The position numbers and the translations under genes are program-made. Positions 611-58,657 of a DNA stretch of 64,000 nucleotides are shown here, piece after piece. The notes under the pieces were generated by a model. The model searched no databases. It was not told the DNA's origin and was given only the letters and a program-made list of their open reading frames with translations. This DNA is from Takakia lepidozioides (lineage: Eukaryota; Plantae; Bryophyta), in NCBI GenBank assembly GCA_030704615.1, contig CM060731.1, positions 34,720,001 through 34,784,000 of the forward strand, written 5' to 3'. The number at the start of each line of letters is the position of its first letter. The stretch's first letter is position 1.

Positions 611-1030
611 CATTAGTACAGATTATCGTTTTTATGACTGCAAATATCACTACATTTGCAGTGATAAGTGCGATTATGACTACATCACTCTGCAGTGATA
701 AACACGAAGTCAGTTCTACCATCACTGCGGAGTGATAAGTGCGAAGTGATGGTCGTCACTGCAGACGTGGCACCTGCCTACGACTCAGAGTGACGTGGGG
801 TGTAGTGTTGTAGTCATAACTATACGACTACAAGGCTACGTGTCATGACTACAATTACGACTATATCACTACAGATGAGTGCCAACATGGAGAGGTCTCT
901 CCATGACACGCATGACCCCCCCCCCGGATGTATATGACTACACTTATGACTATATCACTACTCACTACATCATTGAGGGTAGCATGTAGTATATTTCATG
1001 ACTACAAATATGACTCCATCACTATAGGTT
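611..1030. repeat. Left TIR and subterminal repeat array of Pack-CACTA copy 1 (putative TnpA-binding motifs)
   Basis: Many copies of (A)TGACTAC/ATCACTAC, mirrored as GTAGTCAT/GTAGTGAT at the right end (~6930-7292). The same arrays occur at 50520-50950 and ~57655-58017. Confidence 0.85.
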
Positions 1031-1457
1031 TGTACTGGTTCTGGTAGGTCATCTAACACGTGTCTTTATTCGATTAGTTTATAAAACCATTAATGTTATT
1101 TTATCTATTTATTTCATATAAATTTTATTTATTGTTTTGATATTCAGATATGTTTCAATATACAGAGCAATATATTTAATTGAATGAAAGAATTTCACAC
1201 AAATACACAGATTGTTGAATGTCGATCATACAACAAAAAAACAATGGGAAAAATGTTCCCATGGATGCCGCAAAGGCTCTACAATGAGCATTCAAGAAGC
1301 CTGAAATGCCACATGGATAAATAACCAAGCCTCAAAGGCTACAAGTCCCAAAACCCAAGCCCACACCGGGCCTGCAGTCCACTAGTACTCATACAATTGA
1401 AGAGTTCTATTTACAAATCACCATTGTGGCATATTTTCAACTACATTGCATCACATA

Positions 1458-1514
1458 GTGCCACCATTGACTGGGATCAGAAAAGTAATCATTCCACAGC
1501 TTCTCGTCATTTGC
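1458..1514 (-). pseudogene. Captured snippet of an OSB-type PDF motif (organellar ssDNA-binding protein)
   Basis: Translates NDEKLWNDYFSDPSQWW(H/D), matching the start of the OSB PDF motif (LWxdxfxnPxqWWD). Also present in copy 2 at ~51383-51440 with WWD. Confidence 0.6.
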
Positions 1515-2581
1515 CCATAGGTCTCCAAAGCCTCCATCCCGCGCCCTTGTTGTGCATATCCTGCAATCATCACACTCCACAACACCAGGACAACACCACA
1601 TGTCGTTCAGCCATACTGTCGAACATTCCCTTTGCATCCTCAATGCACCCACATTTGGCATACATGTCCACCAGGGCAGTGTTCAGAATGACAAGTGCAA
1701 TTCCAGATTTGATGATGCCACCATGCATCTCTTTGCCCTTTTCCAGGGCTGCCAGGCTTGCACGAGCTTTGCAAACACACAAACGTGATCTGGTTACACT
1801 TCACCCCTTCCCCCACCATTTGCTCATAGGTCTCCAAGGCCTCCATCTCGCGCCCCTGCTGTGCATATCCTGCAAGCATGGCATTCCATGACACCATATC
1901 TTGTTCAGCCATACTGTCGAACACTCCCTTTGCATCCTCGATGCACCCACATTTTGCATACATGTCCAGGGGCTTTCACCCCTTCCCCCATCATTTGATC
2001 ATAGGTCTCCATACCAAGTCCCTGCTGTGCATACCCTGCAAGCATCGCGTTCCATGACCACATCTCGTTCAGCCATAGACTTGTTGAAAACTCCCTTCGC
2101 ATCCTTAATGCACCCACATTTCGCATACATGTCCACCAGGGAAGGGTTCAGAATGACATCTGGTATAATTCCAGCTTTGACGATGTCACCATGGACCTCT
2201 TTCCCCTTTTCCAGAGCTCCCCTGCTTGCACACATTGCAAACACAAAAAAATGTGATGTGGTTGGGCTTCACCCCTTTGCGCAGCATTTGCTCATAGGTC
2301 TCCAAAAGCATTCCTACCACACCCATGCTTGGTAAATCCTGCCAACATTATATTCCACGTGATCAAAGATCGTTGAGGAATTCTGTTGAACACTTGGTGA
2401 GCATCCATGATGCTCCCACACTTAACATACATGTTGACAAGGGTGTTGAGTAGGAAAACATTTGGTGTGAATCCGCTGTAGATAATGTGAGTGTGCACCT
2501 ACTTTCCAGCTTCCAGACCTTGAATCATCTTGATGCACTTAAGCAAGAGACAGACATACGTACCTGAATCTGCTGAAATGC
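1515..2581 (-). pseudogene. PLS-class PPR gene fragment (frameshifted) inside Pack-CACTA copy 1
   Basis: Repeated LVDMYAKCGCIEDAKGVFDSM / VSWNAMLAGYAQQG / EKGKEVHGDIVKAG motifs are spread over several short ORFs in shifting frames. Confidence 0.92.
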
Positions 2582-2922
2582 AAAAAACATGTAAATTTGT
2601 TGCAGCAAGGAAACTTTCACCCCCACTGTTCTGCAGTACTCGAGTTACTGTAGCCCAGTGTGAAGACAACCTGTTCGACTATGACGTTGTATTGGCACTG
2701 TCTGTCACCTCATCTACTTGTTCTTGAAGCCTCCGGACTTGACTATGTTGGCTTTCAACAAAAGCAATGAGGTTACAGGTACACCTGTTCAAGGTGCTGC
2801 CATTCCTACCCGTCCTTGCTGCCACAACTATTCAAAGCCTAGGCCAAAATCTTGGTGACATTATTAGTACAATACAATACCGCTTTGGGCCAGCCTCCTA
2901 GCACACAGAGAACACAGACCGT

Positions 2923-4830
2923 TTACTTAATTTTTTTGCTGAAATACGACCCAAGTTTTGTGGAGAACTTCTTCTTGGCTTCTCCGCTGAAGGAAACTTG
3001 AACTGCAAGACCTGGGCCAGTGACTCTAGCTGTTTCTGGTCTTGTGCGCCAGCTGGGTTCGAGTAAGGGAATGGCCACACCTCCACCATTGGCTGGACTC
3101 ACTGCCACCCCAACAGTGCTGCGTGTCGTTTGCGTTGTGGCCAGAACTGCTTTGTGCCGCTGTTCAGTCTCTGCCCTCCATTTCGGAAGCTCCCCTTCAA
3201 CTGCTGACTTTGCAGCCTCGGCCAACTCAGCTTTGTGAATTGCCTGTCTCATTGCTGCTCGGCTAGCCTCGGCCTCATTCTTGGCTGCATCAAATTTGCT
3301 CAAGCTCTCTTGCTCACTCACTTTTGCTACATCAGCCTGCCATCATGATCTCAAAGTTAGTCCTGATGGCTGCATTAACATTGTTTACTGTTCATAGACC
3401 CTAACTTCAAAACCTGTTGTCACACTAATAGGTGTATTTCACTAGTCAGAACTCTGATAGAACTTTCCAGGTCACAGTTTAGAAGGACAGGAAAACTCTC
3501 CCCTACACACAGCACAAGGACATTATCGGAGGAGAAAGAAATAAGAAAAACTCTATAATATGCACTGGAAGCCCAAAGGGAGAGAGAGAGAAGGTGGTCG
3601 ACCTCATAGCTATCTCTTTTAGACAGTAGTTCTTTCTAATCTTATGTTTAGCCTAGATGGCCATGGACTGGAAGGCTGCAGGGATTGTAGGTAGTGACAA
3701 CAGAAATACTAGGAACAAAAGAACTAACCTGAGCCATGGCTGCTGCCACTCGTTTGTTGGCTAACTCATCTGACTCTTGCAGTTTTCTGCTCAATGCCTC
3801 GTACTCTTCCTGTGAATGTGTAACCTCAAGTCCCAGTTCCTTGGCCTGTGCATCAGTATTGATTCTCCTTGTCAGTGATTTCACCTGCAACAAAGAATCA
3901 CTTTCAGGTTTACTTTGCATCGCTGCTGCCTGACTACCATTTGCATTCTAGCAATACAATTCCTTGAGACAGTACAAATCCAATGCCAAACAGTCAAACT
4001 CCTCGGTCAATCAGCAGCATATGAATTGCAAGCTTTGAATACACAAGCTTCAAATCATCCTAAAACAAAATGTCCAAAACAATTTACACAAGTATCCTAG
4101 GAAAACAATCTCAGTTACAATTGACAAAAATATCTGAAAATGAAAATGAATCTGAGCAAGAGGAAGGGACTCGCACAAGTTTATTTCAAACCTCTGAGAG
4201 TGCCAGAGCCTCAGAAGCTCTTGCTGCCTCAGTCTCCCTCAATGCTGCTTGCAACCGGCTATCTGTGGTGCTCATATGTGGCTGGATTTGCTCCAACTCT
4301 CGTTTGGCTCTGGCAGCTGCATCTCTTGCTTCAGCTGCTGCAGACTTGGATTCATCTGCTTCAATCGTCACCTGCTTGACAATCCATATACAATTTTGAG
4401 TGGAAGCAATACTAGATACACGCAAACAAGCAAGCCCTAAACAAGCAAGCCCCCCCCACATCTTCACACTTCCCTTTCTCCCCCTCTAGTCTCATAAGCT
4501 TCCTGTGGACTGTAAATCACTCTAATACTGGTCAGGTACACATTCCTTGACCTGGTGCAAGGCCTCAGTCAAGGCTGACACATTCTCCTTAGCCTTTGCC
4601 TCTGCCAAAGTAGCAGCCTCCAACTCTGCCTGTGCTTTGGTTAGCTGCTGCTCCATCTTCACAGCAACTGTCTCTCCCTCCCTCAGTATTGAAAGCTCTA
4701 TCTGATTTGGAGTTCGCCAACTCAGCCTTCAATGATGCCAGAGAGGCTGACAGCCTTGCCTCCTGCTCAGAGGCTCTCTTCAACTTCATGTTTGATTCTT
4801 CTAATTGGATGGAGAACACTCTAGCCTTCA
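2923..4830 (-). pseudogene. Captured 3' part of a WEB1/PMI2-like (DUF827) coiled-coil gene, 4 exons with 3 introns
   Basis: Exons ~4830-4552 (frameshifted), 4371-4192, 3884-3729 and 3336-2923 have GT-AG borders. Motifs include EAARASEALAL, EYEALSRK..LANKRVAAAMAQ and AEAAKSAVEGEL.KWRAE.EQR. Confidence 0.85.
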
Positions 4831-4916
4831 ATTAGTCAAGGGAGGTCATTAGCTGTATGTTAGTGGGTACAATGTATCCAAGAGGAAAGCCCAGGATACC
4901 TTTCATCCAGGTGATG

Positions 4917-4977
4917 GGTGCTCTTAATCCCCTGACAAGAGGATTTCGGCTTTCACTTGGCAGGGGTTAAAAGCACC
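4917..4977. repeat. Small imperfect inverted repeat (MITE-like hairpin) within cargo
   Basis: GGTGCTCTTAATCCCCTGACAAG ... CTTGGCAGGGGTTAAAAGCACC. Confidence 0.55.
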
Positions 4978-5003
4978 TAGGTTCGCTATATGAGTGCCTT
5001 CCA

Positions 5004-5387
5004 TAGAGCCTCTGTCAGTCTGCCTGCCTCACAAAGCATCTTCACATGCCCAGAAGTGCCAGAAGAGGCATTGTGGACTCCCTCTCTTGATCCTCTTTCA
5101 GAAGCTGTGGTCATGGTTGAGGTGCCTGATTTACTGTGCCGCTGCAGCTGCTGCCTTTAGTTGACCATCTACCCATGTAGGTTTCTTGTGGCTATTGATC
5201 CACATGGAATCATAGGTAATCTTGAGCTTGAAATCTGGCCCTCTTGGATGAATCTGGACCCACTCTCGATCCCTGCTCCTTCAGCTATCTCTGCCTCTGC
5301 ACAGATCATGCACACATGTTTGTCTTGCTGCTAGCAGCTGACAATGACAGCCTAGATGTGTTCCAGCAAACACCCTAACCCTACTTA
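5004..5387 (-). pseudogene. 5' (targeting-peptide) region of the PPR gene
   Basis: Homologous to 52650-53030 and 56362-56554. In copy 2 it is directly contiguous with the PPR repeats (…GHVKILCEADRLTEALQTL). Confidence 0.7.
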
Positions 5388-5922
5388 GGAACTTATTATA
5401 GAACCCACCTCCGATATGCCCGCAACGGTTATCAGAGACACTTCGACTGGCACTGGTGATGGTACTATCACAGCGTTTATCGGATTGTCCACCATCCCGT
5501 GACCTACACCTCTAAGATTCATTACGCATGGGATGTTGAATGAAGCAAGATGCTTCGCCGGTCCGACTCCACTTAGTAGTAGCAACTGTGGACTGCCCAG
5601 AGCCCCTGCTGTCAAAATTACCTCACCGTGTCCCAGTCGATCAGGTCCCAGCCCAGCTTCTTCCAGGAATGCCCAATGCTCAACACCTTCAGCATCTGTG
5701 TACACGACGCCCGATGCAGATGGCTTTGAATCCTCCGCTGCAACCATGTGGGATCCAAGTTCATAACCCGGGTCAATGTGAGTATTGTCAAGAAACTGAG
5801 GAACTAACTTCAACTTGCAGAACGTCAACCGTCATGATGAATGTCTTAGAAGATAAGCTCGACTTGTTTATCATACTGACTACTGAGCTCCTACTGAGTC
5901 AGTTTGGTCAAGTAAAAATTAG
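5388..5922 (-). pseudogene. Captured GMC oxidoreductase (HOTHEAD/mandelonitrile lyase-like) exon plus upstream intron
   Basis: Translates GEVILTAGALGSPQLLLLSGVGP…GVGHGMVDNP…VIVPSPVPVEVSLI. A splice acceptor TTGCAG precedes the exon start at 5737. The segment is absent from copy 2. Confidence 0.88.
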
Positions 5923-6039
5923 TCCAACAGGCATTCACTTTTTTGCACCAACGAGCTAACTTGCAGAATTCAACCTGAAAATTTAGGGATGACTATGATA
6001 AGAGGGAAAACAGGCTGAAATGTGTTGAAGAAGGTGCTC

Positions 6040-6700
6040 ATAGGTCTCCAAAGCCTCCATCCCGCGCCCTTGCTATGCATATCATGCAATCATCGCACTC
6101 CACGACACCACATCTCGTTCAGCCATACTGTTGAACACTCCCTTTGCACCCTCGATGCACCCACATTTTGCATTCATGTCCACGAGAGTACTGTTCAGAA
6201 TGACATCGGGTACAATTCCAGCTCTGACAATGTCACCATGGACCTCTTCGCCCTTTTCGAGGGCTGCCAGCAGGCTTACGCATGCATTGCAAATGCAATC
6301 AAACGTGATGTGGTCGGGCTTCACCCCTTCCGCCATCATTTGATCGTAGGTCTCCAAAGCCTCCTTCCCGCGGCCTTGCCCATTCAGCCATACTGTTGCA
6401 AACTCCCTTCACATCCTCAATGCACCCACATTTCACATACATGTCCACGAGGGTGATATTGCAAACTTAAACGAATGTGACCCGGTCCGGCTTCACCCCT
6501 TCCCGCATTATTTGCTCATAGGTCTCCAAAGCCTCTATACCATGCCCCCACTGTGCATATCCTCGCCCTTCCTACATCATTTGCTTAAGAATAAGCTCAA
6601 GAAAGCCACATCAGTGCTCAAGAATAGGTCGCAAAGCCTCAACCCCATGCCCTTGCATTGTATATCTTGCGATCATCCCGTTCCATGACATAAGTTCTCC
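6040..6700 (-). pseudogene. Second PLS-PPR fragment block in copy 1
   Basis: Translates ETYDQMMAEGVKPDHITF…LVDMNAKCGCIEGAKGVFNSMAERDVVSWSAMIA. Homologous to ~56700-57420. Confidence 0.88.
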
Positions 6701-9472
6701 CTCCTTCGGCTCGATACTACGAAAACAAATGGTAGCGCGGGAGACAAAAAGAGGCTAAGTCCCAGCCCTATGTGTTCACGGCTGAACGTGGGCAACCCTA
6801 AAGCAATTTTTTGAATTTTTTGAATTTTTTGCTCTTTGTGGCATTCCATTGACACAAGTGCTTTGTTAAAGATAGATGGATGAGGTCATCCAATGGATGA
6901 ATCCATTCATGTATATGCCTTAAGATGCCACGTGTAGTGATGTAGTCATATAAACATAGCTGGAAACCTACTATAGTCATGTAGTCATAAGCTTCTATGG
7001 CATGTCATCAATGTGTAGTAGTGGTGTAGTCATTTAGTCATAAGCTTATATGGCACGTGTCTGACGTGTAGTATTGCGTATGACTATTAGTTATATAAAC
7101 CAAGCATGTGTTCTTGGTCAACAATGTTTGACCACAGCTCCTAGTCATGTAGTAACATATATGACTTCATTAGATTAAAATATATTAAAATGCGCCCAAC
7201 AATGGGTTTCATCACTATGTAGTCACATATATAGTCATGGTTACCGAGGTTTATATTACCCGTAGTCATAAAAACGACAATCTGTACTAGTGCCTCCACT
7301 GGGCAGTGGAGGTTCCAGTTTCTGGTTGCTCATGTGCAAGACATGGGTCTACGAATACTCTACTCTGGTCTGCACGAAGCCTATTGTTAGCATATGTCTA
7401 CTGTAGAATACAAGTAGACTAGGCTATCGTGGTTTTTCAGAATTGCCAAATTCGACATAATTGGATAAGAAATGAAAATTTTCATTCAGAATCGAATTTG
7501 AATGGGAAGAAATGCATCAACTAACGCTGGATTTGGGGATCAAGAAAACGGTTGAGAAATAAACATCTGGGCATTTCCGAAACCATTGTCCTCAATAAAC
7601 CACCACAATGAACAAAACAAGCAATACAACCAGCACGGTAATCTCCCGCCACCCTAAACCATTACCCTAATCGACCAGAACAAGCACACACAAACCCAAT
7701 TGCACACAAAACCATCCTACAAACCATCGGTGAATTGAAAAACAACAATGACGCAGGAATGCACTGAAGCACAGAATGGAACAAGAGTGAAATGAATTGA
7801 CAGAGAATGAAACAACATTGAAGCAAACAATGAAGCAAACAATGAAGCAGAAACCTAATGTGCACTAAAGCACGGACTGAAGCACTGAAGATAGTGCAGT
7901 GCAGCAGAGAATGAAGCAGGATCCAAACGAATTGGATCTTGAACAGGCCACATGAATCGAGAGCGGGCCAACACAAAACTGAGAACATGCCAACACATGA
8001 ATTCAGAACAGGCCAACACAAAACATGAAACAGAAGACGAAAAGAGGGAGTTTTTAATGTTGTATCTGCTTGTGCCGGCCATTTTGGTGCCCCTGCAACC
8101 ACAGTCCTTCGTTTGATACTCTCTTCCGCACCTTCGCCTGCCGGTAATTGCACTGTGCTCTCGCCTCTACACTCGTCAATCTCCACTCGCCACTGTCCGG
8201 TCTCTCCTCCCCGCTCTTCAAATTTCGCCTATTTCACTCTCTCACCTTTCACCCTCTCCTCTCTCTGCACTCGGCCAAGTCTGCTCTTTCTCTCCACGCT
8301 CCAGTGTCCAGTCGCTGCAAAACGAGCTCCAAAACTCTTCTCTTTCACGCTCTCCTCTCTCAACTGTTAAGCTCTCACTCGCGCAGCGCTTACGCGTAGA
8401 AAATGGGAAGCCCAAAGGCCGTGCTCAAAGAGCGCACCCCTTATAAGCGACCTTCAAGGATGATCTGAAACATCGCCTCCGTCCGAAATCGAACGGTCGC
8501 GCGGCCCAAATGGATGTTCTGCCCCATCCACGCAAACTAACATTAATACTGTCCATCCACACAGATGAAATTAGTTCAACTTTTGTTCCACGAATGCACA
8601 CACGTTTATACAGACAACTGGAGAGACGAATGAAAAAAGAACGAAATGATTGTAATGATGCCATTGATCAGACTCTGCAACCCTCACACTTACAAAAATC
8701 TTAAAATAGATTCGAAGCCAACAAACCTTAACCCACGCCCCAAACGCACATGTGACCACCCACGTGACACGCCTAGGCAGTCGTTTCGAACTCAATCTGC
8801 CAGAAGACACAACGTTGTACCTATGGATTCGTCACACTGTATAATCATTGTCTCATATTGGGCTGTCCACGATTACTTTCGGCTGTTAGCCGCCAGGCGT
8901 CAATATTCCCTGACAGACATACGGCTTTAAGGATAGTAGATGGCCCCTCGTGTCGGGCATTCCTCGATTTAAGGTCCAGAGCCACCATAGGGACTGCCCA
9001 TTTATCGAGGGATACCCGACACGAGGGGTCCATCCCTACATTAAACATGTGCAAGCAAGCAAGGCACGACAGAGCATTCCGCACACCTGTAATGCACCGC
9101 CCTCACTGTCCAATGCAATGCGCCGACATGTAATGCCCCGCCCTGCCCAAGTGTTTTATTCACTGTAACAGCACGATAAATATAAACAGAACAATCTCAA
9201 AGTGCTTTATGGTTCACCTCCGGATCCTCCCAGCTAATTATATAATGATCGATTGTTAATGTGCAGTCCCGAATTAGTTGTGGCGATTAGCCGCCTAACT
9301 TCATTTTTCTAGGCCACTTGTCAGAATCGACATCCTTCACGCTTATTCCAGAGTCTGCTGTCAGAGTCGCACGATAATGATGCCAGACTTGTAGTCCTAC
9401 TAACGTACAAGTACGATAGAATTCAGTCTGATCGCGGCCGTTATTGTTTGTTCCATAATTAATGTGACAATG

Positions 9473-10693
9473 TGTCGCGCACCTCACTTCGGTAAGCTCC
9501 CCTTCAAGTCATAGTTACTCGCTTTTATGCGCGCGACTGACTCCCAACCTGGCCGCCGGGCCAACTTGGAGCTTCGGCTGCTCACCGGGACATAACGGTC
9601 CCCCTTCGCTCTCCCACTAAACCCTCCACCTATTTGGGCCTAGTGGAATTCCCTTTTGTAGATGGCAGTCCGGAACAGCTCCCCACTCTTTTGCCGCTTT
9701 CCGGCTCGCTCGCTTACTCACTAGTTTTTGGTCACCAACGGGCTTGCATCGTTCTCAGGGTCACTACTCCCCTTATATATACTTCTGTAGCTATCCGCGG
9801 GGGTTTCACAACCAGCCATGCCATTTTATGGCGAACCACCACGAAAACCCTCGACTCCCGGTGGTGAGTCGCGGTGAGTCTTGGCCCACTCACCACGGCC
9901 CCATTGGGCCGTGATGAGTCCCAAGACTCCCCACGACTCCCTCCACGAGGTCTCCACCCCATGGTGAGTCCTATGCCACCCCCACTAAGTCCCGCTAAGC
10001 TACCACCACCTCTTGTGGAGCCACCCCCACCGCAACCCGGTCTGCGGGGCTCCACCTAGTGAGCGCCTCCGCCTCCTTGAGTGCCTTGGGCACTCAAGGG
10101 TGCTCGAGGCACGACGCGACCAGTAGCTGCATCAGTACCGATATCTCCCACTACCAGCACTAGTAGTGGAACAAGTAGTGCCGGTACTTCTGCAGGTGGT
10201 ACCAGTTCAAAAGGTGCTACTACTCCTCCTACCACGACTACAACACATGTGCCTAGATTTAACCCGGTGGTGGAGTTCTTCCAGGAGTTGCGGAGGAACT
10301 ACCAAGGTGTACGGACAGAGAAGCTGCGAAGTTTGCAAGACTTCCAACGCAAACCCAGTGAGAGTTTGCGAGAGGCCTACACTCGTATGAGGCGCTTGAT
10401 AAGTGTGACCCAAGGGGTTACTGAAGCTCAGGCAATCCAGTTCTAGTATGGAATTTTGGACAAGGAGCTTAGGAGAAGGGTGCGGGATGCAACCCTGTTA
10501 CAAGCAGCCTAACCCACATTAGCAGATGTGTTTCTGTTGGCTGAGCGGATTGAGCTCAACATGGTGGAGGAGCGAGTTGTTACCATTGGGTTTGGCAAGG
10601 ACCCCCCATACCTATCGCTGCCGCTGCCCCCACCACAGGGGCAGCCCCTCATGTGTCCCGACCCCCCCGCCCTCAAGGCAAAGGGCCGCGACA
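9473..10693 (-). repeat. 3' LTR (1221 bp, contains a 497-bp insertion)
   Basis: Aligns to 16199-16926 with roughly 14 substitutions counted by eye, apart from the insert at 10105-10601. Confidence 0.95.
10105..10601 (+). pseudogene. Foreign retrotransposon gag (capsid) fragment embedded in the 3' LTR
   Basis: Translates FFQELRRNYQGVRTEKLRSLQDFQRKPSESLREAYTRMRRL…F*YGILDKELRRRV…PTLADVFLLAERIE, with in-frame stops at 10444 and 10510. It differs from the element's own gag. Confidence 0.75.
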
Positions 10694-11598
10694 CACACCC
10701 CTACCAACAGGGAGTCGATGTCCTCATCGACTTGTCCATTTTGTAGAAACGAACATCCAAGTTGTGGCGTCCCACATCAAGGAGTTTGTTTCCGTACCAT
10801 GGCGCCCCATGGCAAAGAACCAAACCCCACACTTGACTCTACTCTCCACTAGCTAGTTCGGCCGACTTCCTCCAAGTCCCGGCCAAGGGTGGAGCCTCTC
10901 CAGCTCCTCCCAGTGCACTCTTCTTGGCCTACTTCAAGGCCAAGGAACGATCCTCCCCGAGGATCGAATCGCCTTACTGCAACAACATTGCTTGCGACCG
11001 CTCGTGATGCCGCTTTTGGCATCACCTTGAGCAAGGGTTCACCTGGAACCCTCTATGACTAGGAAGATAACCTTGAACCAACCGTGCGCCCCAATCACTA
11101 CAATTGGGTCCGCCTGGGAATGCTGGCCTGAGGTACGGGAACACGCAGAAGCCGCACTACGACTTCGTCCCGAGGCTACACGATTATAGTACGTGAACGG
11201 AAGCACGTGGCTTCTGCATTAGCCCGCACTACAAGGCAACCCCCTCGGTAGCGCAGTTATAGCACGCGCACGCGCCAGGTGCGCACTAGCACGTGAACTC
11301 CCAAAGAAAGCGCAAGTTTCATTGCCCCTCGGATGGGGGTCACCCGATTTTGGCACTACGCAAACACATGATTAACCCAATTTATCTCTCCCACTTTTAT
11401 AAGGTAGCATGCATTCTACACACTAGCCAACCATACCATGCATCACCATTCCAAACAAAATAGGACGCACAACATTTGGAAGTCATTTCATTTATAGCAC
11501 GTTTTGTACAATACAAGTTTTTGCAATCGGATTCCTAAGCTAGCTAAGCCGGGCTAAGCATGCATTTCCTCCCCCACGCTCCAAGGTTGATGTCCCCA

Positions 11599-16143: not shown

Positions 16144-16184
16144 GATGAGGCCAATCCCAAGGACGATCGCGTACTGAGCTCTAA

Positions 16185-16196
16185 GCTCTGATACCA
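16185..16196 (-). promoter_or_regulatory. Primer-binding site complementary to initiator tRNA-Met
   Basis: TGGTATCAGAGC on the minus strand, 2 nt inside the 5' LTR boundary. Confidence 0.93.
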
Positions 16197-16198
16197 AG

Positions 16199-24414: not shown

Positions 24415-24451
<37 letters not shown>

Positions 24452-32409: not shown

Positions 32410-32414
<5 letters not shown>

Positions 32415-32463
<49 letters not shown>
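32415..32463. repeat. (GA)n microsatellite in the PADRE 5' leader
   Basis: Read directly from the sequence. Confidence 0.95.
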
Positions 32464-32465
<2 letters not shown>

Positions 32466-32493
32466 GACAAGAGAGATTTGTTATAGCGAGGAA

Positions 32494-45454: not shown

Positions 45455-45690
45455 CAACCAATAGTCAGTAGCTAGTGAGTAAGTGGAGGGCACACATATG
45501 ATGATGGGTCAAAGCATGACTACTTGACGGGTTGTGGTACGGTGCTTTCTCCTTCTTGCGCAGGTGTCGCATCGGAAAGCCTTTCACGGCGAGGTTATGT
45601 GAAAGAGGTTGTTTTCTCCTCTCAATTCAACGGGGCCTGTTTGTGAGCTGTCGCTCCCAGGGTTTTTCCCTTACAAAAAACAACAAAACG

Positions 45691-45723
<33 letters not shown>

Positions 45724-45932: not shown

Positions 45933-47730
45933 CGCTACAACATATTAAGGTTTTTATGTTGCATATAGACGTTTTTCAGTGTTCATAGTGCGTTACGACC
46001 TCACTCACTCTAAAGAGAAAAAAACTATGTGATAGCGACTTTCATCCTGCGCGTGGGTAACATGCAGAGGTTATCGATACTGCGTACATGGCCACTACAT
46101 GATGTCGGACAGTGGCATGAGTCAGTACCTATGGAGAGTGATGTAGTCATAACTATATACAACTTAATAACTACATTATATGACTACATGTCTACTGAAC
46201 ATTGTCTACATGGAGAGGCATCAGCGGGACACGTGTGCCACTGCGGATGTGACACGTCATGAATTCTTGACGTGATCATATGACTATATGTTTTTATTTT
46301 TTAAAGTTTTATATAATTTAACAATATTTTTAAAAATTAAATTATTTAAATGAATTAAATTCTTCATTACATTGTGAAAATTCCAACATAAAAACAGAAT
46401 TGAACCCAGTATTGTCCTACATACTAGCAACCACAAGGGGAATCAAAATAGACAGCTACAGGGGAATACAAGCCTTGTTAATCATATTACAAAAATCCAA
46501 ATGAGACCAATGTCCCAATGGACACCTCATAGGCTTCAAGGTCCAAAAATGCAAGCCTCAAAAGGCCCAGTAAGCAAAAAATAAGCAAGCCCACACATGG
46601 GCTAAATTGTTGTAGTACTACTACAGTTCTGGTGCTACTCGAATCAAGGACTATATTTAGCAAATAACCAGTGCAATATTTCTTACACCTATTGAGACCC
46701 GTGTTTCAGCAACTTCAAATTCCAAAGTGTTGTGGTCCCTATCACCTGTCCCAACTCTGTACGTTTTCTAGAACCATTTGACATATGGTAGAAGAGTGTT
46801 ATTGACATATGCATCTTTGATGTACACACATGCATAATCCACTGGCACAAACAGAGTACCCGTAACCCACCAAAACACCTTGCAAAACAACAATAAGCCC
46901 TACTCCTGCAACCTTCTTGCATTTGGAGTTGACATCCAATAGCCGAACCTCGTCACCCACCCTAAAGTGTGATCCCAACTCCACACAAAAAGAACAATAT
47001 GTGAAAAACCCCATGACTTGCACGACTAGGACACAACATAGGGGGAAATGAGAGCCCTCAAGTTGGAACAAATGAAACCGACAAGACAAGTTGTTGGACT
47101 TACTCCATTTGCACTCTTGATGGGTTGTGAGACCTCCTTTGGGGGGCTACCGGCTTGTCGACAGTCTTGGCCGCGGCCTATAATGGCTTGTGATCGACAA
47201 TATTAGGTCGCTTAGTCACAAGTCTTTGTATCACAGACCAAAAAACAATAGTGTATTAGTGACATTCACAAGCACAATTCACTGCAAAGAAAACCTTACC
47301 ATGTGACATGGAAATATAGTTGGCCAACCAAATTGCAATCCAGGTCCATCACCCGTAGGTTAGCCACATGACCTCCATCTAATCCTAAACTAACTGTTAC
47401 AGTTTGACAAATCCCTAAGCCAAAAAATAACCTCGTCCAACTTGCCTCTTATAATGATCCCTTTCCAACGACCATTTGTCCATCCAAAATGAGGAATAAT
47501 AGCCAAGAGGGAATCCTTGCCCTCACATATATGATGTATGTCGGCCTCTCCAATCGAGCGAGCTCCTACGAGCTTGGATTCAAATTTCAATTGCCAAATG
47601 GTCACTAAAAATAATTAAGCAGAATCTAGAGCATCCGATGCAAGAAAGTTGAAAAAACTACTAAAACAGAAAAAATGCTCTTCAAATCAAACGAAGGACA
47701 AAACTCTTTGATGGAAAAACCCTAATTGCT
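45933..47730 (-). mobile_element. Decayed CACTA element related to the Pack-CACTA pair (right end not found)
   Basis: Degenerate TIR CGCTACAACATATTAAGGTTTTTATG and GTAGTCAT/ATGACTAC motifs. 46500-46690 resembles 1245-1440 (CAAGCCTCAAA..GGC…CAAGCCCACAC). Confidence 0.6.
46689..46990 (-). pseudogene. TnpA/Tnp1 (En/Spm ORF2-like) C-terminal fragment, frameshifted
   Basis: VGDEVRLLD…KVAGVG…GYSV, then in another frame LGQVIGTTTLWN. This resembles the Tnp1/En/Spm C-terminal domain (pattern recall). Confidence 0.5.
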
Positions 47731-50700
47731 TACAAGGTGATGCTATCAACTAGCACGCAACAGAAAACTAACAAATATTATCATAAATTGTAGAATATTA
47801 TCACCTCAGATCAGTTGAGATACAATCACCGATCCCACGAGATCGTTGTAGAAACACCATCTAGATCAAGATCTCAAAGTATTGTCATTGACACGTGCTC
47901 GATTTTTATGAGTGCATAGCCGCTACTCTCAACGAATGAAGCAAGGTTGGTCGTGAGGACTTGTTCCATGGTCATCAGCAATTTTATTAGCCTTGTGAGT
48001 TCACGAGTGAATAGCTGTGAGTTGTGTCTATGAGTATTGCAACTGAAAGCTTGGTTTAAGGAATAGAGATAGATAAGATGAACGAAGTCACATTTCACCT
48101 TTTTTTTTGGTGCTCTGCTGAGTTGGAGAGCGGGAGGAGCTTGCCAAATAGGAGCATTCAAAGTCCAAGTTAGGATGCAAGTATGTGAGAGGTAGAGGCC
48201 AGGCAAGACTCGGTCTAGTCGAGGAAATGGAACACTATCGTAGAGACTTGTTGAACCTTGAAGTGAACTCAACTGTGAACACATTTCTAGTATATGCCGA
48301 ATGATAGTAACATTTTAAGCTAGTAACTAAATACCCAGCAAGATAGATAGGTCAAGTATAAAAGAATCAAGAACCTAATACGCTGATATGTTCATTTTCT
48401 TAATATGAAATCCCTGTTGGCAATATGAGTTGGATGTCCAATGTATAACTAGTGATTCAGTACGTAACGATGAATTCTGAACACTTGTTCTCATGTCCAC
48501 ATGAGGTTGGAACTTGCCACTACAAATTGTAATGAAGGTCTTTGTGTGCGGAGAATTTGAGTTCTTTGTGTCGTGATTGTATCGAAGTATCAATGATCAA
48601 GTTGATGATAATGTGAAAATTGTAAAATGGTTAATGCATCAATTCAATTGTTCAACAATTGTTATTTGCATGCAAATTTATGTTGTCTATGGTGCGTCTT
48701 GAACTTTAAAATTTATAAATAGATCTCTAACACAAAAACATTCATTTGCATTGAAACCCAATAAATACTAAATATTTTTTTTAATTTTCCTGAGTTAAAT
48801 GCGTGTATGTGTTTGTACTCGTTTTGTTTATCGGTCCTATAATTTACTAAACAAAGTGATATATCATACATAGTCTACTACTGTCTATGAGCACTATGAT
48901 CTTGAAAAAGTTTCTACATTTCAGAATGATACTTTGTCATATGTTCATAATCATTCATATTGATAATGTATTATTGTTTGTATGATATAATATTTGAGAT
49001 TCCACCTCTTTTGTGATTTTTAATTATTATGAATTTTCTCCGTATTTTTCAATAGCACATAGCTGTTGTTACTTCATTTTTAAGAATTACCTGTACAATC
49101 CATCAATCCTTTTGGTATACCCATTAGTGAAAAAATGCGACTTGGGGATACGAGCTTTGGGAAGTGATAGAAATATTGTACTCATCTAGTTCAGAGCCCA
49201 TATTTTTTCAATCAAAATTTACATGGTGAACTAGAGAATTTATCCATGGATATATCATCACCATAAGGGATGAAAGTTGAAGGGATTGATGACATTGATA
49301 TTGTACAAATTCCAAAGTGACATTGAGTTCAATATGCACTCTTCGATACGTGAATCCATGTAGAATTTCATATCTTGCGAAGCTTCCAACCATCAACTTT
49401 CTCATTATTGTATGTTTTCTTGGTGATTTTGAATTTGTTCTCACTTCCTAATATCATCTTTATAAAAAGATTTTTCATCTTCTCAATTTCATATTTATTA
49501 TGTGAATTAGCCTTGTCCACAAGAATGAAAGTGGAGAGGCATTGGATCAAAATTCAGAAGCATTTTATCCCTTAACTTTGATATTCTCTTTATTGAGAGT
49601 AAGTCATCATTTTTTATAAAGATTCATCATAACCAAGTAAGCGGTGCCCAATGTTGTCGAAAACTGTACCACTTGTTTTCTAAATGTAGCGCACATTGTG
49701 ACAATGTGAACATTTGTGGGCCCAATGAAACAAGTTGCAAATGACGTAAGCACTAGCTGCGAAGACGTATGATGAAACAAACTTACAATGTCATCTTAGA
49801 GCACCCTAAACCATAACCCGAAATTATCAAATGTCATTGATTCCACCGTAATGGGGTGATGGAGCACATACCTTGGGCCCTCAGTAATTAAGTTGCAAAG
49901 CTTGCAAAGGCAGTGATGGAGTTGGGTTTATATTAAGATCGGAAATAGGAATTATCAAAATGTTGAACAATCATGTGATGTCTTGTCTAACAGTTACAGT
50001 AAGTGGTTGTTGGCACTGGATGTGTAGGGCTATCTGGTTTGATTGCACAAGTCGAGTATGAGAAATGTGGCTTCATGTCCCGTTCACAAGTCCAAATCTT
50101 GGCTACACCCCTTGCACAATTGCGGGTTGGGAACTAACGACATGTTGCTGGTTGATACGTTGTATGGTCTTGTTGTACATATGCGGAAGGGATCGGGCTC
50201 GATACTTGCTTTAAGATGTAGGTTTTGCTGCCCACTTGCTTCGACACCTATCAGAAGCCTTCACCGCATTTCTTGCAGTTGTGTCAACGCATATTAAAAC
50301 AAACTTGATCCGTTGGTAGTCCGTAATGAGGCCAACTTCCTTGGGGTTTTGCGAGCGGAGTAGAGGGTACCGCTCTAGCAGATCCAACATCATCTCCACA
50401 TCCTTCTTTAGCTGTGGTATGGACGAATAGTGCACATGGGCAAAATTTCGCCTATTGATCATTGAGTCCAGATGGTCGGCCAAGTCGATCACAGACATGT
50501 TCTTTGCCTTAGCAAGACTCACTAGTACAGATTATCGTTTTATGACTGCAAATATCACTACATTTGCAGTGATAAGTGCGATTATGACTACATCACTCTG
50601 CAGTGACAAACACGAAGTCAATTCTACCATCACTGCGGAGTGATAAGTGCGAAGTGATGGTCGTCACTGCAGACGTGGCACCTGCCAACGACTCAGAGTG

Positions 50701-51439
50701 ACGTGGGGTGTAGTGTTGTAGTCATAACTATACGACTACAAGGCTACGTGTCATGACTACACTTACGACTATGTCACTACATATGAGCGCCAACATGGAG
50801 AGGTCTCTCCATGACACGCATGACCCCCCGGATGTATATGACTACACGACTGTACCTTATGACTACACTTATGACTATATCACTACTCACTACATCATTG
50901 AGGGTAGCAAGTGGTATATTTCATGACTACAAATATGATTCCATCACTATAGGTTTGTACTGGTTCTGGTAGGTCATCTAACACGGGTCCTTATTCAATT
51001 AGTTTATAAAACCATTAATGCTATTTTATTTATTAATTTCATGTAAATTTTATTTATCGTTTTGATATTCAGATATGTTTTAATATACAGAACAATATAT
51101 TTAATTGAATGAAAGAATTTCACACAAATACATAGATTGTTGAATGTCGATCATACAACAAAAAACCAATGGAAAAAATGTTCCCATGGATGCCGCAAAG
51201 GCGCTACAATGAGCATTCAAGAAGCTTGAAAGGCCACATGGATAAATAGCCAAGCCTCAAAGGCTACAAGTCCCAAAACCCAAGCCCACACCGGGGCAGC
51301 AGTCCACTAGTACTCCTACAATTGAAGAGCTCTATTTACAAATCACCATTGTGGCATATTTTCAACTACATTGCATCACATAGTCCCACCATTGACTGGG
51401 ATCAGAAAAGTAATCATTCCACAGCTTCTCGTCATTTGC

Positions 51440-53030
51440 CCCTAGGTCTCCAAAGCCTCCATCCCGCGCCCCTTGCTGTACATATCCTGCAATCATCACA
51501 CTCCACAACACCACATGTCGTTCAGCCATACTGTCGAACACTCCCTTTGCATCCTCAATGCACCCACATTTGACATACATATCCACCAGGGCAGTGTTCA
51601 GAATGACATGTGCAATTCCAGATTTGATGATGCCACCATGTATCTCTTTGCCATTTTCCAGGGCTGCCAAGCTTGCACGAGCTTTGCAAACACACAAACG
51701 TGATCTGGTTACACTTCACCCCTTCCCCCATCATTTGCTCATAGGTCTCCAAGGCCTCCATCTCGCACCCCTGCTGTGCATATCCTGCAAGCATGGCATT
51801 CCATGACACCATATCTTGTTCAGCCATACTATCGAACACTCCATTTGCATCCTTGATGCACCCACATTTTGCATACATATCCACCAGCCTCCAGGGTGTT
51901 GTTCAGAATGACATCGGGTACAATCCAACTCTGACAACGTCACCATGGACCTCTTTGCCCTTTTCCAGGGCTACCAAGCTTGCAAATGCACACAAACATG
52001 ATGTGGTTGGACTTCACCCCTTCCCCCATCATTTGATCATAGATCTCCAAAGCCTCCATACCAAGTCACTGTTGTGCATACCCTGCAAGCATCGCGTTCC
52101 ATGACACCACATCTCGTTCAGCCATAGACTTGTTGAAAACTCCCTTCGCATCCTTAATGTACCCACATTTCGCATACATGTCCACCAGGGCAGGGTTCAG
52201 AATGACATCTGGTACAATTCCAGCTTTGACGATGTCACCATGGACCTCCTTCCCCTTTTCCAGAGCTCCCCTACTTGCACACATTACAAACACAAACAAA
52301 TGTGATGTGGTTGGGCTTCACCCCTTTGCGCAGCATTTACTCATAGGTCTCCAAAAGCATTCCTACCACACCCATGCTTGGTAAATCCTGCCAACATTAT
52401 ATTCCACGTGATCAAAGATGGTTGAGGCATTCTGTTGAACACTTGGTGAGCATCCATGATGCTCCCACACTTAACATACATGTTGACAAGGGTGTTGAGT
52501 AGGAAAATATTTGGTGTGAATCCACTGTAGATAATGTGAGTGTGCGCCTACTTTCCAGCTTCCAGACCTTGAATCATCTTGATGCACTTAAGCAAGAGAT
52601 AGACATACGTACCTGAATCTACTGAAATGCCTCATTGGTTTAAAGTCTGTAGAGCCTCTGTCAGTCTGTCTGCCTCACAAAGAATCTTCACATGCCCAGA
52701 AGTGCCAGAAGAGGCATTGTGGACTCCTTCTCTTGATCCTCTTTCAGAAGCTGTGGTCATGGTTGAGGTGCCTGATTTACCAACTGTGCCGCTGCAGCTG
52801 CTGCCTTTAGTTGACCATCTACCCATGTAGGTTTCTTGTGGCTATTGATCCACAGGGAATCATAGGTAATCTTGAGCTTGAAATCTGGCCCTCTTGGATG
52901 AATCTAGATCCACACTCTATCCCTGCACCTTCAGCTATCCTGCCTCTCCACAAATAGTGCATTCATCCTTGCCTTGCTGCTAGCAGCTAACAATGACAGC
53001 CTAGATTTGTTCTAGGAAACACCCAACTTA
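51440..53030 (-). pseudogene. PLS-PPR gene fragment including its 5' region
   Basis: Same motifs as 1515-2581, contiguous with MGRWSTKG…EALQTLNQ. Confidence 0.9.
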
Positions 53031-54516
53031 GCTTATTACACTAGTTCCTATGCTCAATTGCATCTGCTATTCTCTGTAATCCCACAGGCATTCCCCTTTT
53101 TGCCTCGATTGTCCCACCATTGATGACAGCTTCTCCTCGTCTCTGTTACCTGTTTCTGGATACTTTCCTGTTGTCACATTGGCCGTATCATGTCAGTCAC
53201 TCCAAACTATAAAAGGTTCACTCAACCACCTAACTTGCAGAATTCAACATGAAAATTGAAGGACGACTCTGATAACAGGGAAAAATAGGCTGAAATGTGT
53301 TGAAGGTGCCTTCATTAGCAGTGCTTTGTTCTATCAATTGTGTTGTTGTCGCTTCTGTTTCCAGTTGACCATCTACCCTGCAGATTTCTTGTAGCTATTG
53401 ATCCACAGGGAATCAGAAGTAATCTTAGGTTTGAAACCCGGTCCTCTTGGATGAATCTAGACCTCTGTCCCTAGTCCTTCAGCTATCCCTGCTTGTGTAG
53501 AAAATCATGAATACATCTCAGCCTTGCTGCTAGCAGCTGACTGACGGCGTGACCTTCTTCCAGCAAACCCCAACCCTAAGGATAAGAAGGCAAAACAGAC
53601 TGCCAAAAGTTTGAAGAAGAAGGTGCTCACCACATTGTCCTTGACCTTGTGTCATGATGCATGGAGGATTTAACCAACCATCAACCCAAAATGACCTCAT
53701 GTGTGCTGCTTGTGTCTGTAGTCAGGTAATGTCGGATTGGTCAGACTGGACAAGTGTTCATTCCACCGCTTCTCCTCATTCTGTTATTTGTTTTTAGATA
53801 CTTTCTTGCTACCACATTGGCAGAAACTTGTCAAGTCACCCCAAACCACCCATAGATCCACCCAATGAGCTAACTTACAACATGCAATATGCATCTCAGG
53901 GCCGAGTCTGATGAGAGGGCAAAACAGGCTGAAATAGGTGGAAGAAGAAGGTGCCCTCACCACATTTCCTCGACCTTGTGACATGACCCATGGAGGATTT
54001 GACTGACCATGAACCCAAGAGGACCTCTTGTGTGTACTGCTTGTGTCTGAGTCAGATAATGTCGAATTGGTCTGTGAGAACCGCCACGGTGCAGCTGAGC
54101 GGGTAGAGATTGAAACACGGCCTGCTAAGACCAAGCTGACTCTCCCAAGAACCTTGTAAACATCAGGAAGAATACCAAATCATGGTAGTAACAGGAGCCA
54201 AGAGCCCACCTTTGCAGGATGGACAACACACCTTGTGATTGCGGTTGTCCCACCATCGTGAAGGATCTTTTATAAAACTCATGCCAGCTCACATCACGAA
54301 CGAGCTAACTTGCAGAACTCTACATGAAATTTTAGGGACGACTCTGATAACAGGGCAAAACAGGGTGAAATGTGCTGAAGAAGGTACCTTCATTAGCAGC
54401 AAATTGTTCTATCAATTGTGCTGCTGCCACTTCTGTTTCCAGGATGACATCTGGTACAATTCCAGCTTTGACAATGTCACTATGGACCTCTTTCCTCTTT
54501 CCCAGAGCTCCCAGCT
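53030..54516 (-). repeat. Mosaic of diverged PPR 5'-region modules
   Basis: Module TTTCTTGT.GCTATTGATCCA…GCTAGCAGCT occurs at ~52830, ~53385 and ~56362. Module CTAACTT.CA…AGG.TGAAAT occurs at ~53230, ~53870, ~54305 and ~56617. Confidence 0.8.
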
Positions 54517-56273
54517 ACGTGTAAGGAAGGCTGACAAAGAGTGGTCAACGAGGACATCTCAATAGCTGCTTGTTGGTCTGAAACCCCAGAATGGGATCAG
54601 CAGGGTTTATACCCACTCTTTTTATCTTATCCTACACAGTACAAAGAACAGTGCTTGTTTCTGTGATTAATTCAGGCCTGGTACTCACAAAAACTATTGT
54701 GAATTGGGGAGTCATACAACCATGACACCGCTAATCAGATGAAAGACACTTCAACACTGGATTCGGCAGACCAAAACAGTCATGGGCACACATAACACAA
54801 CACAGTTACATGAGGGAATGAATTCATATATGTGACTGCTCCGCACAGTACGCAGCCCTGCCAGGCAGGGCCCAGACCTACACAGATACATTCACTCGAT
54901 AACCTTTACACATCCTAAAAAAGAAACTGAACTCCTAAACATACACAACTATTCGAGAGGCCAAATTAGCAAACACCCAGACATGACATGGGCAGACATG
55001 GTCAATACAAGAGAGGGCCAAACATTTCAGCCCACTATACAATCCATCACTCATTCCAGGCAGGTAACACATATGAAAGAAAACACACACAAGGATCATT
55101 AAGGACCAATTTCAAAAGGGAAGGATTAACATACATACATGAGTCGAGAATATGCAGACATGTATAGCAGCAACATGTGCAGCAAGTGTTTGGAAGCCAT
55201 GACCATGCTGCATAAATCTGACTTAGTGCGTAGCCTCAGTTAACCCACTGGATGTCACCAAAGGCAAGATTGGACTTTCAGAAATGAGGCATGCTGCAAA
55301 TTTGAAGTTCGAAGCTATGGAGACCAATTTGAACTCCCCTATAAACACCAAAGCACCCTATGTCTAATCATGGAAAACCTGGCTTTCGTACCACAAATTT
55401 ATGATGGCTAAAAATGAAGGCATAAGTTGTCCACCACGATACTTCCTCTACATTTCGAAGGTGAAGGGAATGGATGTGTTTCATAAGGTTTAATTTATCA
55501 ATGTTAGTATCCTGCAGAATTCTAGGACTCAATCAACCCAGGGAAAACGTGGATGTGGAAAATTCCTTAAATAGGTAGAGCCCCAAAAGGCGCATCACAT
55601 TTCTGGAAATCAGTCAAAGTTTCAAGGATTTTGCCGGTCTAGACAGCGAGAATGCTACTGGATACATACTGTGAACGTGCCACTCCAAGAGCCAACATTG
55701 AGTTGAATATACTGTTCTAGCGTGGCTAAGCCCATAGCTCTATCATTCTCTCCCTCTTCATCTCCATTACTATGCGCAGCAGCCTCAGACGACACAGCTT
55801 GGCTGCAACGGATGCAAAGAGGCTCACGCTTCCTCCTCCTCCTTACAAAACCTCGAGGCCTGAGGAAGATTTCCCTTGCAGTCCTCTCAACATTAATCCT
55901 ACACTGTTGTTGAGTCTTCGATAGCCGCACGCTGAATCCATGGCAACCAAAAAAGGAAAAAATGTACCCCCTAAAACACTAAGTCTGGAGAATTGAACAT
56001 CAAAATCAATAGACTGGGGAGCAGTCTACTTGCACAAGTAAGATTCACAGCAACAAATTTCCGGCCTGAATAACTACCTGCTGATGATGCTTTGCAAACC
56101 TCCAAAAAACTGGCACTCACTATTCAGTGGGTACCTGTGATACTGTTTGTAGTTGCAACAATGCCATAGAGATCCTCACTTAGGGCACCAGAGAGAAACA
56201 CTGGTGAAAACTACAAACTCCAAAGTAGAATTCAATTCTGTGGAGAGCCTGAGTGGGTGAAAACAACACATGT
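54517..56273 (-). pseudogene. Captured 5' end of a DUF3598-like gene (upstream DNA, exon 1 ~55941-55670, part of intron 1)
   Basis: A transit-peptide-like stretch, then LATLEQYIQLNVGSWSGTFT, is followed by a GTATGT donor. The segment is absent from copy 1. The family call is from motif recall (NxGxWxGsF). Confidence 0.6.
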
Positions 56274-56699
56274 GGGTGTTGAGTAGAATTTTTTTTGGCG
56301 TGAATCTACTTTGGATAATGTGAGTGTGCATCTGTTTTCCAGCTTCCAGACCTTCCACGCAGGTTTCTTGTAGCTATTGATCCAAGGAATCATAAGTAAT
56401 CTTGGCCCTCTTGGATGAATCTGGACCCACTCTCTATCCCTGCTCCTTTAGCTATCTTTGCCTTTGCACAAATCATGCACACATCTTTGTCTTGCAGCTA
56501 GCAGCTGACAATGACAGCCTAGATCTGTTCCAACAAACACCCTAACCCTACTTATCACACAAGTTCCTATACTGACTTGCGCTTCCAACAGGCATTCACT
56601 TTTTTGTACCAACGAGCTAACTTGCAGAATTCAACCTAAAAATTTAGGGACAACTCTGATAACAGGGAAAACAGGCTGAAATGTGTTGAAGAAGGTGCT

Positions 56700-57420
56700 C
56701 ATAGGTCTTGTTTTGCAGTGTAATGAAATGCACCCCAAAACTCCTGGAATGAGACAGAGAAAGCCTCCATCTCGCGCCCTTGCTGTATATATCATGCAGT
56801 CATCGCACTCCACGACACCACATCTCGTTCAGCCATACTGTTGAACACTCCCTTTGCACCCTCGATGCACCCACATTTTACATACATGTCCACGAGTACT
56901 GTTCAGAATGACATCGGGTACAATTCCAGCTCTGACAATGTCACCATGGACCTCTTTGCCCTTTTCCCGGGCTGCCAGGCTAACGCATGCATTGCAAATG
57001 CAATCAAACGTGATGTGGTCAGGCTTCACCCCTTCCGCCATCATTTGATCGTAGGTCTCAAAAGCCTCCTTCCCGCGGCCTTGCTGTGCATACCTTGTAA
57101 GCATCGTTCAGCCACACTGTTGCAAACTCCCTTCACATCCTCGATGCACCCACATTTCGCATACATGTCCACAAGGGTGATATTGCAAACTTAAACGAAT
57201 GTGACCCGGTCCGGCTTCACCCCTTCCCGCATTATTTGCTCATACGTCTCCGAAGCCTCTATATCACGCCCCCACTGTGCATATCCCTGCCCTTCCTACA
57301 TCATTTGCTTAAGAATAAGCTCAAGAAAACTGCATCAGTGCTCAAGAATAGGTCGCAAAGCCTCAACCCCACCCCCCTGCATTGCATATCTTGCGATCGT
57401 CCCGTTCCATGATATAAGTT
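56700..57420 (-). pseudogene. PLS-PPR fragment block in copy 2
   Basis: Translates YAQQGRGKEAFETYDQMMAEGVKPDHITF…. Homologous to 6040-6700. Confidence 0.88.
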
Positions 57421-58657
57421 CTCCCTGCTTCGGCTCGATACTACGAAAACATATGGTAGCGCGAGAGACAAAAAGATGCTAAGTCCCAGCCCCGTGTGTT
57501 CACGGCTGAACGTGGGCAACCCTAAAGCATTTTTTTTGAATTTTTGAATTTTTTGTACTTTGTGTCATTCCATCGACACAAGTCCTTTGTTAAAGATAGA
57601 TGGATAAGGTCATCCAATGGATGAACCCATTCATGTATATGCCTTAAGATGCCACGTGTAGTGATGTAGTCATATAAACATAGATGTGAAACCTACTGTA
57701 GTCATGTAGTCATAAGCTTCTATGGCATGTCATCAATGTGTAGTAGTGATGTAGTCATTTAGTCATAGGCTTATATGGCACGTGTCTGACGTGTAGTATT
57801 GCGTATGACGACTAGTTATATAAACTAAGCATGTGTTCTTGGTCAACAATGTTTGACCACAGCTCCTAGTCATGTAGTAACATGTATGACTTCATTAGAT
57901 TAAAATATATTAAAATGCGCCCAACAATGGGTTTCATCCCTATGTAGTCACATATATAGTCATGGTTACCAAGGTTTATATTATCCGTAGTCATAAAAAC
58001 GACAATCTGTACTAGTGACTGGCCAATCTCACGTCCTCTGGTATCCTATTAGCGAGGGTTTTATAGCACTTGGAAGAATACGTGAAAGCTTTCGGAGCCT
58101 CTGGATCATGAAATCTGTCTAGCTCATGAAACGATATCAATAAATGTCTAATTTGCAGTGGAACCCTAGCTACCAACCATCCCACATGTCATACCCCGTC
58201 AGAATCCAATTGTGTCAGTATGTTCCCCCTCTGACGATCATCTGTCTAGCTGGGATGCAAGCACGACCAATGACTATGTCAAAGCCATGAAAATCATCCA
58301 CACTCTCAGCATGAAGGTTACTGTCACTAAAAATCCGCCAATCCCGGTCAGCATCCTCAAAGCAACGAACCAAAAAAAGAGTATCCTGGCCTGGAGGAGC
58401 TTTGACTCCATGAATGATGTCAATGGTGACATGGAAAACTAGCACCGACACAATATCACCACTGCCCCGCCGATGATAGTTAAACAACAGATGCTCTAAT
58501 GCATGTCGCAAGGGGGCTGCCCTCCAATGCCAAGCTCATTCTACTCTTTCATAGTCTTCCTACTGAGAGTAGTAAGCTGCAGAAGTTCTCATCCTTAGAA
58601 AGTTGTTTGTGTGAGGTGTGTTTAATGCGAGAATTCAAAATAATTGTTAGCTTGGCT

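Follow-up and report, generated by a model that had tools for sequence, protein, structure and literature searches.

Soybean CACTA elements of the Tgm-Express1 type, which Zabala and Vodkin, cited in PMC13317346, reportedly described in 2007, are said to carry pieces of several host genes. Several host-gene pieces are likewise found in two non-autonomous CACTA elements in a 64,000-nucleotide stretch of the moss Takakia lepidozioides (assembly GCA_030704615.1, contig CM060731.1, positions 34,720,001 to 34,784,000; hereafter, the window), although the spliced chimeric transcript of the soybean case was not seen for the Takakia copies. The Pack-CACTA elements of Arabidopsis, rice and maize (PMC6379663; PMC8903248) share with them the same non-autonomous ends, a 3-bp target site duplication (TSD), gene fragments from multiple loci and the lack of a transposase. 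In contrast to these angiosperm elements, the Takakia copies reside in a moss, their backbone stems from a huge editing-factor family, and two datable captures lie mid-element with tiny deletions. The single-copy Pack-TIRs (TIR, terminal inverted repeat) that gap filling forms in animals also hold foreign DNA at internal breakpoints, with a small loss of element sequence and unamplified cargo (PMC8277862); here, instead, a plant CACTA element bears nested multiple captures.

Overall, we might conclude, with a probability of about 0.75, that both copies belong to a non-autonomous CACTA family built on a PDF-PPR backbone and remodelled inside by break repair, in which later captures did not spread and the products are pseudogenic. 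Gene-capturing elements of this kind are known already, and the plant lineage is what is new. Transposons capture genes widely across plants, including gymnosperms; moss or fern goes unmentioned in PMC8903248 on Pack-CACTA. Our literature search, whose coverage was incomplete and left the Takakia genome paper outside, returned no report of Pack-CACTA in bryophytes or of PPR cargo.

Two CACTA insertions at unrelated sites

An earlier note, made from the sequence alone, had placed elements with common TIRs and subterminal arrays at 611-7292 (TSD CCT) and 50520-58017 (TSD ACT) of the window, and both the coordinates and the TSDs were confirmed (copies 1 and 2, respectively). The rule that it cited, CACTA/TAGTG ends with 3-bp TSDs for CACTA elements, also holds for this pair: the termini of copy 2 are perfect, though the left end of copy 1 reads CATTA. 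The TIRs measure about 28 bp. The 22-bp terminal word occurs in the window only at these four ends, even with five mismatches allowed. An 8-bp subterminal motif is found 11-13 times per end, compared with 0.2-0.5 times in shuffled sequence, and runs in opposite directions at the left and right ends. Thus, the terminal CACTA...TAGTG, the 3-bp TSD and the short TIR with oriented subterminal repeats behind it, which characterize the CACTA (En/Spm) superfamily, are all present. So are the Pack-TYPE features, namely no internal transposase, host fragments with intact donors, retained introns and copies at unrelated sites; of the Pack-CACTA features open to testing, none was missing. No Pfam match to a transposase exists in or near either element, ten leftover frames are likewise without a Pfam match, and a scan of metagenome contigs for the family TIR gave zero matches.

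Copies 1 and 2 are two separate insertions, since their TSDs differ, their flanks are unrelated and an empty site can be restored. When copy 1 is excised in silico together with one TSD, a perfect hairpin with 11-bp arms emerges, identical at 26 of 27 positions to an intact copy at 403-429. This hairpin is thus present twice, at 403-429 and at 598-610/7296-7318, the second being the target of the copy 1 insertion.

A distance of 43 kb separates the copies, which point the same way and have their common blocks in order, as might be expected of a segmental duplication or of a single PPR pseudogene region that was misassembled. However, the TIRs mark the exact limits of homology, and 148 of 3678 sites in the shared blocks carry substitutions (~4%), the copies also differing in structure. 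Shared flanks were what the earlier note had named as evidence for a segmental duplication; the flanks were compared and proved unrelated. With the differing TSDs, the unrelated flanks, the restorable empty site and homology bounded by the TIRs, we rejected this explanation as hardly credible.

A diverged left subterminal array (67-74%) with a spacer remnant, devoid of a TIR, is located at 46130-46540 and represents an older related subfamily.

The PDF-PPR backbone and exchange between its repeats

Broken PLS-PPR blocks common to both copies, as claimed earlier, were confirmed by Pfam, and their longest stop-free frames reach only 92-117 aa. All identified cargo pieces of both copies are on the minus strand. 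No match to the C-termini of 13 DYW-type proteins was found in the elements, and neither copy holds the intact PLS array with E/DYW of a PPR-DYW editing factor. A profile of the PDF motif detected about six remnants in copy 2 but only two in copy 1, and the rest of the window has none; the earlier note had seen a single OSB-derived PDF snippet in each copy.

Among 1.84 billion representative proteins, ranks 1 and 3 of those closest to the element PPR were Diphasiastrum proteins starting with PDF motifs, and one of them is colinear with the PDF, linker and first PPR motif of the elements. A Sphagnum protein shows the same plan. These genes (Diphasiastrum KAJ7568880.1 and KAJ7517631.1; Sphagnum KAH8950713.1) share with the elements the order of PDF motif(s), linker, first PPR and PLS array, whereas the element versions are fragmented, repeated, devoid of E/DYW and embedded in a transposon. 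OSB proteins (PMC6963530) also possess the PDF motif, single or arrayed; unlike them, the elements show no OB-fold, and their PDF is tied to PPR. A literature search on the PDF-linker-PPR fusion matched a single paper, in which the fusion is not described.

To 400-6399, we aligned contigs from a DNA run, a plant metagenome and two presumed RNA runs. Spliced models were searched exon by exon. In reads, the PDF-linker region reaches the depth of the PPR blocks, and both RNA-type runs contain it; the PDF-linker-PPR gene family (5004-5387, 52740-54420) has very high depth and is expressed in this genome. Since PDF, linker and PPR are colinear in homologues and equally deep in reads, PDF and PPR come from one kind of donor, and the PDF motif is part of the backbone's gene family rather than a separate OSB capture. 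A separate OSB donor was therefore rejected: what follows the PDF is a linker and then PPR, the arrangement of PDF-PPR proteins. Hence, where the earlier note counted at least five donor genes, we see four kinds: PDF-linker-PPR, WEB1, GMC and a BFA1-like gene.

This backbone predates the split of the copies, because the PPR units pair with their counterparts in the other copy (89-98%) before their own neighbours (50-89%); in copy 1, a deletion disrupts one of the units. As cross-copy pairing prevails for every unit, we rejected the idea that the PPR units were amplified in tandem once the copies had split.

The copies differ in 3.5 kb found only in copy 2 (a BFA1-like exon and a PDF array), situated between PDF units 1 and 3. 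The corresponding copy 1 unit (5004-5387) is a chimera of these two: it agrees with unit 1 at 23/23 informative sites up to 5215 and with unit 3 at 19/24 sites from 5256, placing the crossover at 5215-5256 (0/300 in a permutation test). One homologous exchange between PDF repeats explains the difference between the copies. The simpler option, loss in copy 1, is somewhat favoured; gain in copy 2 via copying from another PDF-bearing template would give the same pattern and is less likely. The claim that copy 2 adds a DUF3598-like 5' end and PPR modules thus stands as to the presence of the block, while the word "adds" does not suit a copy 1 unit that is itself a crossover product.

The DUF3598-like identity is only weakly backed. 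The sole match of the exon in the Protein Data Bank (PDB) is the BFA1 N-terminus (residues 9-38, E 0.4), ending at a GT splice site. No Pfam match to PF12204 (DUF3598) was obtained in copy 2, no second exon was recognised in 54521-55669, and homologue and atlas searches were blank, although the homologue search cannot recover full-length proteins from so short a query.

The WEB1 and GMC captures and probable break repair

Copy 1 alone carries WEB1/PMI2-like and GMC/HOTHEAD-like pieces, as noticed earlier. Three exon pieces match WEMBL/WEB1 (E 2e-10 to 2e-7), at 4373-4190, 3884-3730 and from 3335, with GT-AG introns between them that are skipped in RNA contigs; since the introns were kept, the capture was from DNA. 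The GMC oxidoreductase piece is confirmed as well, and the HOTHEAD-like label fits, as the closest solved structures in PDB are mandelonitrile lyases. A 1988-nt RNA contig, from which the introns are missing, agrees with WEB1 exon 4190-4373 at every site and with exon 3178-3335 at all but 3 sites and extends far past the fragment, while a 1533-nt RNA contig matches the GMC piece over 307 nt and then continues beyond. Because these transcripts extend past the captured pieces, intact WEB1 and GMC donors exist elsewhere. Neither donor is in the window, and a scan of metagenomes for the WEB1 locus confirmed none. Overall, the earlier idea is upheld in that a Pack-CACTA family inserted several times independently in the genome of a non-seed plant, where its donors are intact, and the F-box gene of the window is moss-like.

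A junction joining 2581 to 5004 (with ~18 other letters) and skipping WEB1 occurs in 7 contigs from DNA and 9 from RNA, so the state without WEB1 is ancestral. Captured pieces differ from long donor-type DNA contigs at 17/2035 sites (~1%), compared with 148/3678 between the copies (Fisher p 8e-14); against RNA contigs, the difference is 2.3% for WEB1 and 5.5% for GMC. Judging by the ~1% against ~4% divergence, the captures are most likely younger than the split of the copies. The captured cargo is frameshifted, with no intact chimeric frame, and all cargo of both copies is pseudogenic.

The WEB1 capture replaced 19 bp of the first PPR motif and the GMC capture 29 bp of the backbone, with no TSD at either; both lie 1.4-2 kb from the nearest element end, and the backbone continues in register to either side. 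The low junction of the GMC piece has a 9-bp filler that is the reverse complement of the deleted bases (p ~0.002 against random window DNA), and nothing significant was found at the other three capture junctions. Templated end-joining or gap filling leaves such inverted filler. Given losses of 19-29 bp deep inside the element, no TSDs and templated filler, break repair is favoured.

Pack-CACTA elements of Arabidopsis arise by another route, in which two neighbouring insertions around host DNA lose complementary ends (PMC6379663). This route is the mechanism observed for Pack-CACTA and may account for the gain of the founding PDF-PPR cargo. However, the WEB1 and GMC pieces do not lie between complementary terminal-deletion derivatives, as short stretches are replaced mid-element with the backbone in register, and independent terminal deletions meeting so closely twice would be rare. 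We therefore consider this route improbable, and the anatomy of both captures fits break repair rather than the tandem-insertion model.

As to copy number, single-copy depth was ~57, taken from bubble branches. Contigs of WEB1 and GMC have a depth of 88-121, also given as 90-190, which amounts to about two copies, therefore the donor and one capture; this cargo is not amplified. At the inner left end, single-contig depth is 874-1138 (~15-20 copies), and the outer 200 bp are deeper still, which suggests that the family has 15-20 close copies.

These observations bear on the picture of an active exon-shuffling vector, in which at least five donors were captured independently and each copy gained and spread its own cargo. 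WEB1 and GMC are indeed independent recent captures with intact donors, and the minus strand carries the whole cargo in one orientation. Nevertheless, co-orientation of three foreign pieces has a chance of 1/8, PDF belongs to the PPR donor, copy 1 is a recombinant of the repeats of copy 2, and the new cargo is frameshifted and stays at about two copies. Such a vector thus appears doubtful; from the earlier proposal that one was repeatedly mobilised, the PDF-PPR backbone survives, and the spreading of new cargo in a chimeric frame does not.

Coming back to a CACTA family remodelled by break repair, we suppose the following scenario. An autonomous CACTA (En/Spm) partner would mobilise the family in trans, and the founding cargo would be scrambled pieces of PDF-linker-PLS-PPR genes, a very large family of editing factors. 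The CACTA family would have transposed to many sites, of which the window contains two insertions with their own TSDs. Its interior would keep changing through double-strand break repair: homologous exchange between PDF/PPR repeats may take out or add blocks, as at the crossover seen in copy 1 (somewhat more likely a loss), and end-joining or template-switch repair may insert foreign genomic DNA while deleting 19-29 bp, as at the observed junctions. It is tempting to speculate that capture possibly took place in situ, after copy 1 had lost its perfect terminus.

Several points weigh against this scenario. No autonomous partner with the same ends is found within the 64-kb window, the BFA1/DUF3598 identification is weak (E 0.4), and the filler was noticed before it was tested and concerns one of four junctions. 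Furthermore, summed contig depth does not equal copy number, Logan contigs collapse bubbles and variants, depth estimates are rough, and the DNA run may come from another accession.

Feature coordinates, neighbouring genes and the PPR expansion of Takakia

Table 1. Features of the two CACTA elements, in window coordinates.
Feature	Position	Strand	Remarks
Copy 1, non-autonomous CACTA element	611-7292		TSD CCT/CCT
Left TSD CCT	608..610
Left TIR, ~28 bp	611..638	+	starts CATTA, one C>T transition from CACTA
Left subterminal repeat array	639..1040	+	12 ATGACTAC-like motifs, 11 forward
AT-rich spacer	1041..1430		common to both copies, no Pfam match
N-terminal half of PDF motif	1431..1505	-	joined to end of PPR block A
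Broken PLS-PPR block A	1506..2581	-	longest stop-free frame 111 aa
Captured 3' part of WEB1/PMI2 (WEMBL) gene	2582..5003	-	introns and 3' untranslated region, frameshifted, copy 1 only
Piece of PDF-PPR gene with PDF motif, linker and beginning of first PPR motif	5004..5387	-
Captured GMC oxidoreductase (HOTHEAD/mandelonitrile-lyase-like) exon piece	5388..5922	-	with upstream non-coding DNA, copy 1 only
~90-bp high-copy segment tied to PDF units	5923..6024	-	four further copies in copy 2
Broken PLS-PPR block B	6025..6750	-
Right subterminal repeat array	6930..7264	-	12 motifs, 10 reverse
Right TIR	7265..7292	-	ends TAGTG, intact
Right TSD CCT	7293..7295
Copy 2, non-autonomous CACTA element	50520-58017		TSD ACT/ACT
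Left TSD ACT	50517..50519
Left TIR (CACTA) and subterminal array	50520..50950	+
N-terminal half of PDF motif	51374..51430	-
Broken PLS-PPR block A	51431..52739	-	continuous with linker, no WEB1; ~130 bp absent from copy 1
Linker and PDF unit 1	52740..53024	-
Array of decayed PDF motifs, 90-bp segment copies and 80-bp PPR piece	53025..54520	-	not in copy 1
Intron-like DNA after BFA1-like exon, 1.1 kb	54521..55669	-	begins GT
BFA1 (DUF3598)-like first exon	55670..55978	-	ends at 5' splice site, weakly identified
80-bp PPR piece and PDF unit 3	56274..56554	-
90-bp segment and broken PLS-PPR block B	56584..57469	-
Right subterminal array and TIR (ends TAGTG)	57650..58017	-
Right TSD ACT	58018..58020

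Next to copy 1, the region 400-599 is also repeated in the genome (summed depth ~3,500), and a 16-bp inverted repeat delimits 6-550, which possibly represents a small non-autonomous element. A further 25-bp inverted repeat (92% complementary, arms 35 bp apart) lies at 8944-9028. A full-length chromovirus-type gypsy retrotransposon occupies 9472-16830 on the minus strand, with gag, protease, reverse transcriptase, RNase H, integrase and chromodomain; its long terminal repeats are 98.3% identical, and stops occur between frames. The segments 30702-30908 and 45457-45672 form a 74% inverted match of ~210 bp, and the second is adjacent to a 61-bp poly(A), possibly indicating a retroposed short element. 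Host genes at 32380-42166 encode a PADRE-domain protein, an F-box protein (identity 70-78% with moss proteins, 66% with a lycophyte protein) and a biotin protein ligase. A GDSL-lipase-like start (58484-58921) is located right after copy 2.

Finally, we would like to comment on the PPR genes of Takakia. The genome has 2,016 of them, mostly dispersed duplicates, and their expansion was attributed to retroposition, the features of which are limited (PMC13386178). One might therefore ask whether the CACTA family is a main DNA-level engine of this expansion, yielding working editing factors. Its backbone is editing-factor DNA, and the dispersed duplicates with few traces of retroposition would agree with such a role. 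In addition, a contig (1234-1547, 96.5% alike, depth 13.6) of one presumed RNA run extends from the PPR/PDF part into the spacer of the element, while DNA lying further out, though equally repeated, is almost without depth; this hints that some family member is transcribed. On the other hand, both copies are broken and hold no E/DYW pieces, and the element ends are hundreds of times shallower than the backbone, with its summed depth of 0.4-1.6 million. Moreover, PPR genes make up ~7% of Takakia genes and are likely cargo through abundance alone. We consider such an engine quite unlikely, and the elements look more like consumers of abundant PDF-PPR DNA than producers of genes.

Returning to break repair inside a CACTA family, one copy retains the site that is filled in the other, so the size of the deletion, the filler and the relative age of a capture can be read directly. 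It is also conceivable, if unlikely, that the family swaps PDF/PPR modules with thousands of host genes in the course of break repair and redeposits them, offering a DNA-level route to PPR expansion and to new editing specificities. If true, this would provide a DNA-transposon alternative to retroposition for the PPR expansion in Takakia, one that could be counted through the family ends.

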